A stretch of 28,956 nucleotides of DNA. Source: Fonticula alba ATCC 38817 (Eukaryota; Protista; Nucleariida). Where the stretch lies: assembly GCA_000388065.2 (NCBI GenBank), contig KB932205.1. The stretch is one strand, 5' to 3'. Made by a program: the position numbers and the translations under genes. Below the pieces are notes generated by a model, which saw only the letters and a list, made by a program, of their open reading frames with translations, was not told the DNA's origin and did no database searches. This document shows, piece after piece, positions 9,813-28,956 of the stretch; the first letter of the stretch is position 1, and each line of letters starts with the position of its first letter.

Positions 9813-11647
9813 CTAGAAGTCATCGTAATCCTCTTCGTCCAGGTTGACCAACGACGAAGTGGCACTGGCTGCTTGGCTGAGGAGGAGGCCGGCCGGGTTG
9901 GGCGCCAGCAGGGGCACCGGCGTCAGGCCCACCGGCCCGGAGGGCGGCGCAGGGGCCGGGGTGACAGCAACCGGCGCCAGGGCAGGCACCGGCACCAGCT
10001 GTATCGAGACCGGGGTGGCGGCGGTTGCCGCCACTGGCGCCGTCGCCGCCGGGGCCGGCGACGAGTCAGCACCCGTGGCCAGGACGGCATTCGATTCGGA
10101 GGCGGAGGATGCCGCCTGCGAGGACGCCGCTCCAGTGCGTTGGCGTTTCCGCGGCGAGGAGACCATCGCCGCCGGCGCCACCACTGCAGGCTGTGAGGAG
10201 GGAGAAGCGCTGGGCTTCGTGGGTGAAGGAGTGGGAGGCGCCGCCGCAAGGGCCGCGGCATTGCGCGCGGCCACACGCATCGACACACGCCGGCCCCCGG
10301 ACACTCCGCTGTCGGCCATCAGGCTGCCTTGCGATTGCGAGGGCGAAATGCCGGGCGACACCCCGGCCGAGGCGGCCGGCGAGGGCGAGGGCGAGGGCGA
10401 GGGACAAACCACCGGCAGGACGGTCGGCGGCTCCTTCGAGGCAGCAGTACCAGGGCCCGAGGCCGGCGTGAGCACAGGGGCTGGGACGGGCGTCGGCACG
10501 GGGGTTGACCCTGGCGTCGAGCCGGCTGGCCCGGCAGCGCGCGCAGGCCCCCGGCTCAAGGCCGCGGTCAGTGGCGACCGGCCAAAGGACAGCAGAGGAT
10601 TCGCCTGGGGGGGCGGTGGGCTACTAGGTACGGCGGAGGGGCCGGCAGCGGCGACACGGCCACCGGCCGCCGACCGCCGCCCACGGGCCTTCGCGGCAGC
10701 CGGCTCCGAGCTGGCAATCGGAGACGAGGGAAGGACCGGCGAACTGGACACCGCCGCCAGGGGAGCGCCCTCATCGCCATCGGGTCCCCCAGTCGCCAGG
10801 CCGGAATCGGATCCCCCACCATCGGTCGTCGGGGTGCTGCCACAGGCACCGCCATAGCTGGTGTCCAGGAAACGCCCGGACAGGGTGCCACTGGTCTCGG
10901 CCTCCAGCAGGGCATTTAGCTGGTCCATGGTGAGCAGTTCGCCGGCCGGGGGGTCTGCGTCGGGGATCGCCTCGACTGTGCTCTTGAGAAAATCGAATTC
11001 GGTCCGGGAGAGGACGGCCCGTTTACTGGATGGAGAAACCCCAGCAGGAGGGGAGGCATGGCATGGCATGGCATGGCATGGCATGGCATGGCATGGCATG
11101 GCATGGGGGGAGCGGGGTGAGGGGCGAGGAGAGGGAAGGTCAGTCGCTGGGGGACACCGGGCCGACAGGGGAGCACAGACCACTGGCCGGGGAGGGGGAG
11201 AACGCACAAATGGACGGTCTGGATGCGCTTGGCGCCGGATTGGCGCGCATCGCCAAGGGCACCGCGCAACAGTTCCCGCATGAGGACCTCAAGTGCCTTG
11301 GCTGGGGCGGAGGAGTGGCGGAGGAGAGGGTAAGCAAAGAGTCTGGTGGCCAAGAGCCTGGGAGGAAACGCATTCCAAAGGACAGGGAGTGGAGGGCGGG
11401 AAATGGGGAAGGAGGGCGGGGGGTGAATGGTGATCGGCTGCGCACAGACAAGCATCGGAGCCGCAAGGGACACCTTGCCAACTTCATCGTCCTGCTGCAT
11501 GATCCGCTTGATGCGGTTCTGGAGAAGGGCCGGGGAACAGGGTCGAGCAAATGCCGGGTCAGTGGCGGAACGGGCAGGAAAAGGCGACAAAGGAACACCC
11601 TGACAGAGGCATACCACCGGGAAGGCGCTTTTAAAGCGTCGCCTCAT
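9813..11647 (-). CDS. DRAP1: Negative cofactor 2 alpha subunit (DRAP1/Bur6): histone fold plus long low-complexity tail, ~470 aa
   Basis: Exons: 11647-11615, 11518-11446, 11301-11208, 11025-9813 (1413 nt). The spliced N-terminus [69 protein letters not shown] matches the NC2-alpha H2A-like fold ([32 protein letters not shown]...FDFLKDLV). Confidence 0.92.
11056..11105 (+). repeat. (GCATG)10 pentanucleotide repeat in DRAP1 intron 3
   Basis: Ten perfect units inside intron 11207-11026. Confidence 0.95.
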
Positions 11648-14486: not shown

Positions 14487-14492
14487 TTTATT
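14487..14492 (-). terminator. AATAAA overlapping the JMJD5 stop codon
   Basis: The minus strand reads CAA TGA ATAAAA; the last A of TGA is the first A of AATAAA. Confidence 0.4.
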
Positions 14493-16528
14493 CATTGGCC
14501 AAGGAAGGCATGCAGGTCGAACCAATTGTTGACTCCGGCCCCGGAGGTGAGCGACCGCGCCGCGTGCCACCACCCGCGGGGGATGAAAAGCGATCGCCCA
14601 GGGGCAAGGAGGACATCCACATACCGGGCCTGCTGGTGCTCGGCGGCGATCGGCCCCAGGGGGTCTGGTGGTGACCCGGGATCCGGTGGCCCGGCCGCCT
14701 GTCGCCGGCCAAGCTCCAACAGGGGCACGGCAGATGTGTTGTGCAGGGCCCCGCTCGTCGGGGCAGCCATGTGTGGCCCTTCGGTCGGTGGCCAAATCCG
14801 GAACACCTTGAACCCGTGGACTTGGGTGTAGATGTTATCCCGGGGGTCGGTGTGCGGGGGGGAGTATGTCCCGGGGGGGCCGATCCAGACGTTGGTCTCC
14901 ACCGGGGGCGGATCCGGCCAGCCGGACTCGCCATCGGCTGACAACATCCCGGCCAGGTGAAGCAGCTCATCGGGTGCCAGGAAACACAGGTCCGGGATGC
15001 AAATGTCCCCGCGCACCTCCGGGAAGTGATGGAAGAGATCGAACTGTGCCAGGTAGGCCGGGGTCGGGTTGTCGGGCGACCCGGCCGCCCGATGTCGGGC
15101 CGTCTGTTGGCCAATGTGTCCGGCCAAGTCCCCGAGGAAGACCACGCGCGGCTGCCAATTGGCGTCGGAACAGCCGGCCTCGGGACTCGGGCAGTAGGAA
15201 GCCCCCAATTCCACCGGAGCCGACCGGTGCCGGCCGCCAAGTCGAGCCACCAGCCGCTGGGGCCCGGCCCAGCGTCGCACAGCCGGCCACCCATCCGCCA
15301 GGCCACCCAGCAGTACGGCTCGCGGGGGGTGATCGACCGTCGCGCACGCGGCTCGCAGGAAGCCACCCGCATCGGCCGGGCTGTCGAAAGCCAACTCCGG
15401 CACGGAGGCCGGGCCCGGGGCCGGCTCGCCCGGAGGAGCCCAGGGTGCCAGCGAGTGTTGGCCGGTCGTGCAGAAGCTTCCCAGCAGCCGCAAATCCAGG
15501 GCCGCGGGGAAGTGCGGGAATTCGGCCATTCGCGCCAGCAGGCGCGGCACCGGACTGCCATCCATGTCGGGAGTTCCGCCGGCAGCAGTGGCCGCGGGGG
15601 GGGTGGTGGCGGTGTTGGTGATGCTGGTGGTCGGGCAGGCGGCCGCCGATTGCAGTAGAGCCTCAAAATCCGCAGCCAACCGGGCAAAGTGTGCCGCCGG
15701 CTCGGCTTCAGCCCAACAGTCATTGTCGGCCGAAGGAGCCGCCACAGGGGCCGGGCCGCGCATCATCGACGCCTCGGCCAGGCTGAAGCCCGAGGTCAGA
15801 TCCACCTGGGGCGCTTGGGGCTCGGGCTGACGGATGCGCGATGCCAGGATGCGTGCCAGTTGCGAGGCCAGAGCATTCAGGGGCATGGTGCTCATGCCTG
15901 CAGGTTGCCCGGGCCCCGGGGCCGGGACGTCCCATGGCGCGCCAAAGACCAGCCCCCGGTCAATGAGGACCACGGCCGCGAGCAACAGGGCCTGCTCCAC
16001 CGGCTCCGGGATTACATGCTGCAGGGCCGCCGACGCGAGGACCCCGGCGTGCAGAAGACACGCCGTCAGCAGGGCCTGGCGCAGGAAAACCGGGACCACC
16101 CGCCAAGGAAGCAGGTGGATCAGTGCCAGTAGATCCGCCTGCAGGAGGGCCAAATGCCTGTGGAAGGCGGCCAAGCCGGGGCCGCCAGCTTCCAGGGTGA
16201 CACCCTCCAGTGCCAGGGCCTCGGCCGGGACGTCGGTCGAAAAGCAACTAGGCGGCCGAAGATCGCCGACCAGACCCGGCCGCGCGCCGGCCAGCCGCGC
16301 GGGGAGCTGGCCCCCTGCCGAGGGAGCCTCGCCATCAATCAGCCCCAGCGCCAGGGGGAAGAGCTGGGCCAGGTGGCGCTCGAGAGCGGCCACCGTGGCG
16401 GGCCAGGTCCAGCCAGAGGGCAGACCGGCCTGCGCCGTCGCCTCGGCCGGCCCTGCTGCCGGCAGATCGCCAAGAAACCGGAAGAAGAGCGTTGCGATCA
16501 GCTCCAGCAGCGGGTCCTCTGGCTGCAT
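14492..16528 (-). CDS. JMJD5: JmjC-domain 2-oxoglutarate oxygenase, JMJD5/KDM8 family, 678 aa as visible (the 5' end may extend toward gap 16566-16831)
   Basis: Uninterrupted ORF. The JmjC core YLAQFDLF..IPD..WIGPPGTYSPPHTDPRDNIYTQVHGFKVFRIW..LAPGRSLFIPRGWWHAARSL..NNWF has an intact HxD..H triad and the 2OG-binding S, N and K. The N-terminal PWRVVPVFLRQALLTACLL..LIDRGLVFGAP resembles the JMJD5 N-terminal helical region. Confidence 0.85.
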   Translation of the reverse strand: MQPEDPLLELIATLFFRFLGDLPAAGPAEATAQAGLPSGWTWPATVAALERHLAQLFPLALGLIDGEAPSAGGQLPARLAGARPGLVGDLRPPSCFSTDVPAEALALEGVTLEAGGPGLAAFHRHLALLQADLLALIHLLPWRVVPVFLRQALLTACLLHAGVLASAALQHVIPEPVEQALLLAAVVLIDRGLVFGAPWDVPAPGPGQPAGMSTMPLNALASQLARILASRIRQPEPQAPQVDLTSGFSLAEASMMRGPAPVAAPSADNDCWAEAEPAAHFARLAADFEALLQSAAACPTTSITNTATTPPAATAAGGTPDMDGSPVPRLLARMAEFPHFPAALDLRLLGSFCTTGQHSLAPWAPPGEPAPGPASVPELAFDSPADAGGFLRAACATVDHPPRAVLLGGLADGWPAVRRWAGPQRLVARLGGRHRSAPVELGASYCPSPEAGCSDANWQPRVVFLGDLAGHIGQQTARHRAAGSPDNPTPAYLAQFDLFHHFPEVRGDICIPDLCFLAPDELLHLAGMLSADGESGWPDPPPVETNVWIGPPGTYSPPHTDPRDNIYTQVHGFKVFRIWPPTEGPHMAAPTSGALHNTSAVPLLELGRRQAAGPPDPGSPPDPLGPIAAEHQQARYVDVLLAPGRSLFIPRGWWHAARSLTSGAGVNNWFDLHAFLGQ

Positions 16529-20081: not shown

Positions 20082-21729
20082 TTAGGTCCACGGCTGGAAG
20101 TCCCGCTCCAGGGTGCTGATGTTGATCATGACATTGTACCCCTGAATGGCGCGGATCTGCCCGGCGAGCAGGGGGTTGAAGGGCTCCACCTCCTTCTCGA
20201 CGAAGATGGCCAGCTCCGTGGGCTCGATGACCAGGTCATACCCGACCAGGGCCAGGAAGTCGCGCTCCATGCGGTTGATGTCGCGCGTGGCGAACATCCC
20301 CCGGGTGAGCTTGCTCCAGCCGCGGTTGGTCAGGGTCTGGTCGTTGAGATACTTGGCGGCCAGGATCAGGGCGATGAAGAAGACCCGGTGGGAGGTGTCA
20401 TCACCGGACCGCGCGGTCCGAGGCAGAGCGGCCTATGGGCGCGAGGGGGGGGGGNNNNNNNNNNNNNNNNNNNNNNNNNNNNNNNNNNNNNNNNNNNNNN
20501 NNNNNNNNNNNNNNNNNNNNNNNNNNNNNNNNNNNNNNNNNNNNNNNNNNNNNNNNNNNNNNNNNNNNNNNNNNNNNNNNNNNNNNNNNNNNNNNNNNNN
20601 NNNNNNNNNNNNNNNNNNNNNNNNNNNNNNNNNNNNNNNNNNNNNNNNNNNNNNNNNNNNNNNNNNNNNNNNNNNNNNNNNNNNNNNNNNNNNNNNNNNN
20701 NNNNNNNNNNNNNNNNNNNNNNNNNNNNNNNNNNNNNNNNNNNNNNNNNNNNNNNNNNNNNNNNNNNNNNNNNNNNNNNNNNNNNNNNNNNNNNNNNNNN
20801 NNNNNNNNNNNNNNNNNNNNNNNNGCGCCCCCTTGGTCCCAGGTCGTGGGGGGGGGGGGCGACAGGATGGCACACGGGGCACAGGGCGGTCACAGCAAGG
20901 TCAGAACACGGGGAGAGGAGGGGGCGGGGGACGCTTCTGGGAGGGAGGACCCCAAAAGGCACACGGCATACGCACCGATGACCGAGCGCGGGACATAGCG
21001 CTGGTACGAAGTGATGACCGAGTTGAAGGGCGGGTTGATGGGGACCAAGGACGGGTGCGGGACCAGGACCGTGCCCTGCTCGTCGTCCAAATGCTCGACC
21101 ATGGAGTCGCTGAGGTTGGCGTAATCCTGGCTGTGGGTGTAGACGGCGGGATTGCGCGAGTACGGAGTCCGGCGGAAGATTTCGCCGATCGACGAGGAGA
21201 AAGTCAGCACCGGCACCGGGAGGATGGGCCCGGGGATGTCGAGCTCCATGACCTCGTAGGCTTGCTGACGGGAGAGCATGCCGCCGGAGTTCTGGCACAT
21301 GACCCGGGGGTAGCGGTTGGGGCTGCGGGGCGCGGCGGCCGCCGGGGCCGGGGCCCCGGTGGCTGCGGGCTGCAGGGCGCCCAGCGCATCGGCCGGGGCC
21401 AGTGTGGCGTCGGTGCTCGGCGGGGTGCAGCCATTGACGCTGGCTGGAGCTGCGGCCCCGGCGGGACGGGGGGCGGCCGCCGCGGCCGCCACCGCCGCAC
21501 GGTCGGCGGCCGTATCCAGCGAGGGGGTGACCGAGTCGGTGGCCAGGTCGCCGGCCGGCCGGGCGGCCCCGGTGACCGGGGCCCCGGCAGCCTGCATGTC
21601 AGCCGGGGCGTCGAGCGAAGGCCCGGTGCCGGGAGCGCCGGCTGCCCCGCGCTGGGAGAAGTTCCAGGTCGGCTGGACATTGCGGTCAGGCACAATGGCC
21701 GACGAGGGGGTGAAAGTGAGGATAGACAT
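20082..21729 (-). CDS. Pho85-type cyclin (PCL1/PCL2 family) with a low-complexity N-terminus; part of the cyclin box lies in gap 20455-20824
   Basis: Last exon 20432-20082 (acceptor cccatag) reads AALPRTARSGDDTSHRVFFIALILAAKYLNDQTLTNRGWSKLTRGMFATRDINRMERDFLALVGYDL, matching Pcl-family HRIFLACLILSAKFHND...N..W..YT.GLF...DINLMERQLL.LL.WDL as recalled. First coding exon 21729-~20976 (donor GTGCGT at 20975, tentative). Confidence 0.82.
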
Positions 21730-21782
21730 CGGGGAAATGGTGATCAGGCCGGGCCGGGGGACAGAGGCGCGGGGAACTGGTC

Positions 21783-24780: not shown

Positions 24781-25171
24781 CGCTCGCATAGCATGCGCCT
24801 TGCTCCTTGTGCCTCCACCCATGGGCGGGGGGGGGCGGGGGGGGCAGCCCCTCTTGGTGGGCGTCGGAATAGACGCGCGCGCACGGGCAGCCCCACGCCG
24901 TCGGCCAGGGCCGCTGGGCGTCATCGGTCCCTGGGGGGTCAGACGCGAGGGGGTCGCGACGTCCGAGGGAGCAGATCGGGCGAGGCCACATCGCCACACT
25001 TAAAAGGGGGGCAGGGCCAGGTGTCGTGCGTGCGTGTGTGCGCGCCCTCTTCCAGACAGTTCCCATCGGCGAGGCACATGTACTCGGGCGCGCGCGCGCG
25101 CAGGATCAGGGGAGATGGTGGGGGATGAGCGACGGCTCGTCGTCGGCCCCGCGGGCCTTCCCACCGCCATT

Positions 25172-25272
25172 GCACCCCGTGGGATCGTGGGGGATGTGGG
25201 GATGTGCCTGCATAAAGACGAGAGGCACCTATGCATGCACGTCCCCACATCCCCCACGATCCCACGGGCTGC
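25172..25272 (+). ncRNA. Long foldback hairpin (~42-bp stem, 15-nt loop); candidate small-RNA precursor
   Basis: 25176-25202 is the exact reverse complement of 25242-25268 (27 bp). The stem extends inward via a U.G pair, 4 bp, a C/U mismatch and 6 bp, and outward via a C/C mismatch and 3 bp. The inverted repeat is certain; expression is unproven. Confidence 0.4.
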
Positions 25273-26128
25273 GAGGGCATACATGCATTGGTGGGGCCCG
25301 CCCGAGCTGCCGAAGGTGGCGTATGCCGGGGGCGGGGGGGGGGGGGGGGAGTGACCCACCACCGGCCGAGACACAGCCCCTTGCCTGGGGAGGCTGAAGC
25401 ACTTCCGGGCCGGCAGCGTCGCCCGGCAGAAGCACTCGCCAAACCCGGCTGCCGGAAGGGTGCCCCCTCTCCCGGGCGCGCGCGCACGCGGCTTCAAGCG
25501 GCGCCACCGCCTGTTAACTTGGCCTCCATGCCTTTGACCGGGGGGGCAAGACGGGACGAGTGTCGCCTGCACACACCGAGCACGCTCACACGCACACACG
25601 CATCGCTGTCCCGGACCCCTCGCCCCTACATAAGACTGAGAGGAACGAGGCCGGAGGGTTGAGGCAAGATGGGCAGACCCAGATACACGCGGGTGCATGT
25701 AGCGCCCCGTGTGCGGGGGGGAGGGGGGGGGGCGCAATGTCGGTACACCAGGGTACTAACCGCAACCGAATACCAGCCATTGCTATGTTTGAGCAAGGGC
25801 GACTTGGCACTGCCGGCCGTCGAAGAGGGAGGAGAAGGAGGTGGCTCCTCGCGAGTAGCTGGTCGTGAGGGGCAAGTCACGAACAACACTTCCCCAGTCT
25901 CTGACGCTGGGTGCGGCTCGGTGGCACCGGCCCGGCGGTATGCGGCGAAAAACCAACCGCACCTGGGCATCTGGACGACTACCGGTCGCAAGCCACACCG
26001 TCGGGGGCAATGGCGGCGGTGGCGGCGGCATGCGGGTTGTGCCCAGTGTGCAGAGAGACGCGGCCCGGCGGGGGTCATGCGCCCCAAGGAGAGACAAATG
26101 ACGGAGGGGCCGCCATATACCTTCTCCC

Positions 26129-26142
26129 GGGGGGGGGGGGGG

Positions 26143-26180
<38 letters not shown>
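26129..26180 (+). repeat. Poly-G plus (GA)18 microsatellite
   Basis: Direct read. Confidence 0.92.
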
Positions 26181-27200: not shown

Positions 27201-28956
27201 GTTCGGCGGAGTGGAAGCAGGCATGGCCGGGGCCGAGATTTGGCAGGCGCGGGGGGGGGGGGCGGNNNNNNNNNNNNNNNNNNNNNNNNNNNNNNNNNNN
27301 NNNNNNNNNNNNNNNNNNNNNNNNNNNNNNNNNNNNNNNNNNNNNNNNNNNNNNNNNNNNNNNNNNNNNNNNNNNNNNNNNNNNNNNNNNNNNNNNNNNN
27401 NNNNNNNNNNNNNNNNNNNNNNNNNNNNNNNNNNNNNNNNNNNNNNNNNNNNNNNNNNNNNNNNNNNNNNNNNNNNNNNNNNNNNNNNNNNNNNNNNNNN
27501 NNNNNNNNNNNNNNNNNNNNNNNNNNNNNNNNNNNNNNNNNNNNNNNNNNNNNNNNNNNNNNNNNNNNNNNNNNNNNNNNNNNNNNNNNNNNNNNNNNNN
27601 NNNNNNNNNNNNNNNNNNNNNNNNNNNNNNNNNNNNNNNNNNNNNNNNNNNNNNNNNNNNNNNNNNNNNNNNNNNNNNNNNNNNNNNNNNNNNNNNNNNN
27701 NNNNNNNNNNNNNNNNNNNNNNNNNNNNNNNNNNNNNNNNNNNNNNNNNNNNNNNNNNNNNNNNNNNNNNNNNNNNNNNNNNNNNNNNNNNNNNNNNNNN
27801 NNNNNNNNNNNNNNNNNNAAGAGGGAATCGGACAGGAGCCAAGGAGGCGATCGAGGGGGAGGAGGGGAGGAGGGGGGGACGAGAGGGAGGGAGGGAGGGA
27901 GGGAGACGCACAGGGTAGCAGCAATGGGGGCACCGGTAGTGCAGTGAGGTGCACTATGTTCGGCCTGGAGAGGGGAGTTTCGAGGGATCTGCGGGAAAGG
28001 GGCGTGGTGGGTGAGTGGCAGGGGCGGGAGGAGGTGAAAGACACGCGCGCGCGCGAGTGGACAGGCAAGTGTCGACTCGGTGGCGGGGAGGAGTGAGTGT
28101 CCATGCGACGGCCGGGAGAGGACGAAGCGGAGGGCAGCGAGGCGGACAGATGGACGGTGGGGGGGGGGTGAAACGGGCAGAGGGCCGACAGGGGGGGGAT
28201 CCCGCCTCCTCGGGACAGGCACGACGACGGACATCCGAATGTGGCTGACCGCCGGGCACCATATGTGCCGGAGGCAACACCACGCGGCGGAGTCGCGCGC
28301 CGTGCCGTGTGCTAGGACCGGGAAGTCGCGGAAAGGGCAGGAGTGGCCGAGGCCCGTCCTACATGCCAGAAAGCAAGGTCGGGAGAGGCAAATGCGAGAG
28401 CTGGAAAATGGCGAGGCTGCGTGTGCCTGGGTGACACGCTGGAGGGCGAGGGGGGGAGGGGGGAGGGGGCGAGGTACAGGTTGAGTAGGCAGGGTACGAA
28501 AAGGAGGTGATGTTACAAAGTTATGGTGGAGCTCGGCGAGGCCCCCCAAAAGCCCCTCACCCCCCGGTGGGCTCCTCTCCCGGACCGAAGGCCTCCCTCC
28601 ATCCTCAGGAGAGCAAGTGGGAACTGGGGGGGGGATAGGGGAGAGAGAGAGAGGGGGGGGAGGGAATAGCCATTGGCACGGCTCCTTGTCCTGGCCAGCC
28701 GTGTGACCAGACCCCTGTGCAATCGGGGCTGCCTGCATGTGCGCCCAGGACCCCGGATTTCCGGGGATCACACATCTGTCCCGGGTGTGATGGCCCCGCA
28801 CCAAATGTCCAGGAAACGCATGGGGCGATAGATTGGGGGGACCCTTGGGTCTGATGCCTGTGCGTTCGCACTCCAAGTGGTCTAGGGAAGGATGCAGGCC
28901 GGATTCGCCCTCGGGGTAGATGCCGGCGCTGCCCAGGGCGGGGGGGGGGGGGGGGG

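Follow-up and report, generated by a model that had tools for sequence, protein, structure and literature searches.

The window, as the whole stretch of 28,956 nucleotides from Fonticula alba analysed here is called, corresponds to C5:1244568-1273523 in a 31.3-Mb assembly of 214 contigs. N-masking affects approximately 11% of the window (11 runs, 3127 nt) and approximately 28% of the 200 kb around it, individual runs being 10-550 nt or longer, and every absence claim for this genome carries this masking as a caveat. The nearest recognisable gene to the inverted repeat considered below is a PHO80-type cyclin gene on the minus strand (20082-21732; translation containing RMERDFLALVGYDL), which is itself N-masked at 20455-20824, with exons at ~20.08-21.45 kb, a probable ATG near 21.73 kb and periodicity at 19.95-21.3 kb. 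Its match to PF08613 (window 20232-20396, 24.8 bits) is a 53-position fragment beside the masked gap. Further upstream in window coordinates, an uninterrupted 678-aa ORF on the minus strand (14492-16528) with a C-terminal Cupin_8/JmjC domain (E 3.9e-25) is apparently an intron-less gene for a JmjC-type hydroxylase or demethylase, and a 464-aa Pro/Ala/Ser-rich low-complexity ORF (9813-11207, minus), with an acidic DEEDYDDF tail and without codon-position GC periodicity, is a putative gene. A tRNA scan of the window found none.

From 21600 to the end of the window at 28956 extends a tract that is G-rich on the plus strand, contains poly-G runs and (CA)n and lacks codon-position GC periodicity; to neither this tract nor the elements of the repeat within it is a strand assigned. 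The codon-position GC spread is at most 0.19 (mostly below 0.10) from 21.6 kb onwards, as compared with 0.25-0.60 for exons elsewhere in the window, and a Pfam search with ten ORFs of 23.3-26.9 kb, two of which span the hairpin, recovered no family. The hairpin is therefore situated in a non-coding stretch of at least 7.3 kb, which agrees with the 'gene desert' that a previous model-made interpretation of the letters and open reading frames (the sequence-only reading) had described, as does its position ~3.5 kb upstream of the likely cyclin ATG. Four poly-G runs of ~16-22 nt on the plus strand (24819-24847, 25326-25354, 25707-25735 and 26126-26154) are spaced by 507, 381 and 419 nt, the hairpin being located between the first two.

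Geometry, stability and uniqueness of the hairpin

The inverted repeat covers 113 nt (25166-25278) and consists, by gap-free alignment, of two 49-nt arms, complementary at 44 of 49 positions, on either side of a 15-nt spacer or loop (25215-25229, AAGACGAGAGGCACC). The left arm (25166-25214) is G-rich, and TRF detects in it, at 25181-25206, an 8-9-nt unit, GGGATGTGG, repeated approximately 2.9 times, in line with the degenerate GTGGG(n)AT units named in the sequence-only reading; the right arm (25230-25278) is C-rich. The five differences between the arms fall at arm positions 4, 6, 10, 38 and 43 and spare a perfect core of 27 nt, in which 25176-25202 pairs with 25242-25268. Given five differences in 49 positions, a clean run of 27 nt has a chance of ~8%, so that the core pattern needs no selection.

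All structural details given by the sequence-only reading for a near-perfect foldback at 25172-25272 were borne out. In 25172-25214/25230-25272, the stem of ~42 bp with a 15-nt loop is reproduced, with two true mismatches (25175, C.C; 25208, C.U) and one U.G pair (25203/25241), and the alternative inner pairing of GTGCCT (25204-09) with AGGCAC (25223-28) is present. A second U.G pair lies next to this stem, at 25171/25273, and both wobbles pair on the plus strand only. Gapped alignment of the 400-nt flanks gave nothing convincing in the way of a larger palindrome past the 49-nt arms, the sole addition being a possible 6-bp CCCACC/GGTGGG pairing beyond an 11-nt bulge.

The hairpin is genuine and lies well outside what chance would produce. 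Folded as RNA, 25160-25285 reaches -95.2 kcal/mol on the plus and -93.9 kcal/mol on the minus strand (z = -12.3 and -11.2, respectively), and none of 200 dinucleotide shuffles equals it on either strand; folded as single-stranded DNA, the same segment reaches -54.5 kcal/mol (z -10.9). The absolute fold energy is not unique, as other 120-nt windows of this ~66% GC genome go down to -83 to -89 kcal/mol. After correction by regression of the fold energy of 120-nt windows on their GC content, the hairpin is the top fold among 10,436 such windows (~164 kb of unmasked sequence), with a residual z of -5.0, the next being -3.2. This second-best fold is an unrelated non-coding hairpin 49 kb upstream (C5:1220813-1220869), with 25-nt arms paired at 24 of 25 positions and a 7-nt loop.

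In the 164 kb sampled, no other inverted repeat has arms of at least 30 nt and a spacer of at most 200 nt. Perfect stems of at least 12 nt with a short spacer number three in the same sample, fewer than in the mirror-repeat control, in a scan that misses stems interrupted near the loop, this hairpin included. As short-spacer inverted repeats show no general excess in the 164 kb, the process that generates them is rare. Taken together, these observations suggest that foldbacks here arise sporadically and independently of one another and do not constitute a sequence family.

The repeat is also unique. The 113-nt hairpin as a query finds one locus in the 31.3-Mb assembly, itself; the 2.7-kb context is single copy in the assembly; and a 24-nt arm probe, with up to three mismatches, matches only the two arms of the hairpin genome-wide, leaving the central 24-mer without a near-complementary target at this tolerance in the rest of the genome. 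In metagenome and viral collections, the core has no exact match, and no homologous locus was found. At gathering scores, Rfam returned nothing over the window. At relaxed thresholds, a dozen unrelated miRNA precursor families matched on both strands, all far below the gathering score, the best being MIR1437 (54.5 bits; gathering score, 168); as evidence for a miRNA such matches were rejected, being sub-threshold, to unrelated families and on both strands, as any long stem gives.

RNase III-like genes and RNAi components

Six-frame family searches of the whole assembly, part of which is masked, yielded zero candidates for Piwi, PAZ, ArgoL1 and ArgoN, and equally no Dicer-dimer or eukaryotic RdRP domain. 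The sensitivity of the Piwi search is illustrated by two control genomes, in which divergent prokaryotic Argonautes were detected, and the recovery of the 53-position cyclin fragment with PF08613 demonstrates that exon-sized pieces are detectable here. In a published survey of Holomycota, which covered the Fonticula alba assembly, neither Drosha nor Pasha was detected (PMC6206976).

RNase III models matched only two loci in the whole assembly. The first is a minus-strand gene at C5:2010850-2011430 (within C5:2009685-2012864), in which a single RNase III-like domain precedes a dsRBD-like exon, with exons at ~1366-1758 and 701-1300 as numbered within the larger interval. Its motifs read NDRLSYLGY, as compared with the signature ERLEFLGD, and RSFHAIAGA, as compared with D-x-x-E-A-x-x-G-A, so that, when aligned with the textbook signature, they retain none of the four catalytic acidic residues. 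The solved relatives of this protein include domains of Drosha and Dicer, the closest small one being the mitoribosomal mL44, and its predicted architecture and apparently dead active site fit mL44. The second, weaker fragment, also on the minus strand (C3:81294-84404, ORF 1093-1674 within it; SDAVKALIGAVFFDQG), covers the C-terminal part only, with the motif SDAVKALIGA, in which the catalytic glutamate is replaced. At E <=0.01 it has no solved relative, and it may represent a further RNase III-fold protein of the mitoribosome. A catalytically intact RNase III of the Rnt1, Dicer or Drosha type was not seen among these two loci. With the masked fraction as a caveat, the genome thus appears, from the six-frame searches, to be without canonical RNAi (Argonaute, Dicer/Drosha, RdRP).

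Origin of the inverted repeat

The two arms differ in their relation to the surrounding DNA. The left arm is in keeping with its surroundings in G-richness and 8-9-nt periodicity, a further degenerate copy of the motif being found 69 nt upstream, at 25114-25127, and the right arm, in which G minus C is -12 per 30 nt, falls into the bottom 1% of 30-mers in 21.6-28.9 kb (mean +3.8). Rare palindromic hexamers are located at three junctions. ATGCAT, of which there are three copies in the 25,829 non-N bases of the window, occurs on the inner edge of the right arm (25231-25236) and again 5 nt past its outer end (25283-25288), forming a 6-nt direct repeat, 52 nt apart, around the right arm. TGCATA, with just two copies in the window, constitutes the inner end of the left arm (25209-25214) and pairs with TATGCA (25230-25235) as the innermost stem. 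The repeat is real, unique, non-coding and compositionally asymmetric, with abrupt arm ends, a short spacer and microhomology at its junctions.

We consider it probable that the feature is a single-copy inverted duplication, a quasi-palindrome, in non-coding DNA and without a function of its own. A template-switch foldback, mentioned as an alternative in the sequence-only reading, is the best-supported explanation, given the single copy, the non-coding setting, the foreign right arm and the rare palindromic hexamers; the event, its direction and its neutrality are what we infer from the arrangement of the letters. The left arm is probably the original template copy and the right arm the derived inverted copy, since a C-rich outlier is the expected look of a reverse-complement copy of the left arm, and equal folding of both strands is likewise expected of a duplication at the DNA level. 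In the course of replication or repair, a nascent strand with the palindromic TATGCA(T) at its end would have folded back onto TGCATA 15 nt upstream, copied ~45 nt of the G-rich 8-9-nt-periodic tract as its reverse complement and rejoined its template at the second ATGCAT microhomology, the hexamers at 25209, 25231 and 25283 thereby serving as putative switch points. The product would be the hairpin-capable repeat, with a few substitutions acquired since, and the ancestral allele would have read ...CACCTATGCAT directly followed by TGGTGGGG..., without the 52-nt block 25237-25288. Alternatively, just the 27-39-nt core might have been copied, onto a pre-existing weak palindrome supplying the outer matches. 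The five arm differences imply that the event is not very recent or that such a shorter core was copied, and the term 'recent inversion' of the sequence-only reading is therefore only partly apt: an inverted duplication fits, its recency less so with arms differing at 5 of 49 positions.

Quasi-palindrome or template-switch mutations of bacteria, yeast and human (Ripley-type strand switching, fold-back priming) share with this repeat the short inverted arms, the short spacer and a scale of tens of nucleotides, as well as an arm that looks copied in reverse complement from the native sequence beside it, palindromic microhomology at the junctions, a single copy and a non-coding location. In contrast, arms of 49 nt lie towards the upper end of the lengths produced by one template-switch event, and the five arm differences would reflect age or a shorter original copy. 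It counts against an inverted duplication that the proposed event is not observed directly and would be known from one sequence, and that the process is rare in the 164 kb sampled; moreover, a 27-bp core that is perfect while the arms diverge by 10% could point to constraint, although chance alone gives this pattern in ~8% of cases.

One alternative is a cis-acting structural element, either a cruciform or protein-binding palindrome upstream of the cyclin gene or a stable stem-loop that would serve an unannotated non-coding transcript as a terminator or as a signal for processing or stability; both could work without RNAi. This reading, which we regard as unlikely, draws on the strongest GC-corrected fold in ~164 kb, on a core that is perfect although both arm ends diverge, on the position 3.5 kb upstream of the sole recognisable gene nearby and on another isolated hairpin in non-coding DNA of this genome. 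However, the lack of similarity to any other locus provides no shared motif for a common binding factor, arms of 49 nt are much longer than known dimeric transcription-factor sites, and neither an Rfam family at threshold nor a difference between the strands, which fold equally well, favours an RNA. A second alternative is a hairpin small-RNA gene (pre-miRNA, milRNA or hpRNA), the transcript of which would be diced to 20-25-nt RNAs guiding an Argonaute. An unbranched hairpin of ~113 nt is stable and of precursor size (~60-150 nt), in the range of plant, fungal and protist precursors, and resembles those of plants, Neurospora, Dictyostelium and ichthyosporeans in its ~110-nt unbranched stem-loop, few mismatches and ~15-nt loop; the sub-threshold precursor matches and the two U.G wobbles functional on the plus strand only can also be cited in favour. 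As a hint of a plus-strand RNA, the wobbles stand as observed, but two transitions would agree on one given strand by chance in 1 of 4 cases. Unlike the known precursors, the hairpin is without a family match, strand preference or detectable target and resides in a genome without detected Argonaute, Dicer, Drosha or RdRP, the only two RNase III-like loci having all four catalytic acidic residues (C5) or the glutamate of the sole motif recovered (C3) replaced; its status as a GC-corrected outlier, as compared with a pre-miRNA, derives mainly from a nearly perfect stem, as in a young duplication. With the RNAi machinery undetectable, a small-RNA gene is highly improbable, and the undescribed small-RNA locus proposed by the sequence-only reading finds no support, failing as it does the refutation by missing RNAi machinery that this reading had set for itself.

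A miniature transposon (MITE or foldback element), its remnant or its excision footprint, would share the inverted-repeat symmetry, reminiscent of terminal inverted repeats, and the intergenic location. As the hairpin, its arm and the 2.7-kb context are each single copy, and metagenome and viral collections are without a match, the repeat is not a MITE or member of a dispersed family, and a derivation of this kind is extremely improbable. In contrast to such elements, it has almost no interior, the 15 nt being too small, and no target-site duplication around the whole, both as already pointed out from the letters: the flanks (CCCACC on the left, ATACAT on the right) share nothing, the ATGCAT direct repeat encloses the right arm only, and the arms are made of local microsatellite-like sequence. 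Some amplification and library protocols are known to generate foldback chimeras. If the repeat had arisen as such an artefact, in the library or in the assembly, it would be a perfect copy, whereas the arms here differ at five positions; together with the unique, non-symmetric flanks on either side, these differences practically rule out a chimeric read, and the spacer of 15 nt is unique and the whole structure far shorter than a read.

Implications of a solitary foldback

The inverted duplication is ordinary in kind, a single-copy quasi-palindrome of known type. As such it matters little: it offers a clean case of a short inverted duplication whose junctions carry palindromic microhomology, of use at most for marking template-switch mutagenesis in the GC-rich genome of a protist. 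That it belongs, with the hairpin 49 kb away as another member, to a class of sequence-unrelated, single-copy, near-perfect intergenic foldbacks of 60-160 nt, maintained for their structure in a transposable element-poor, RNAi-less protist, is a very doubtful proposition; if true, such foldbacks would be punctuation marks of transcription or replication, or precursors of a Dicer-independent structured RNA. The apparent absence of Argonaute, Dicer/Drosha and RdRP argues against a miRNA-precursor reading of any hairpin in this genome, and a discrete transcript product from such hairpins, if there is one, would be made without the canonical machinery and hence be of interest.
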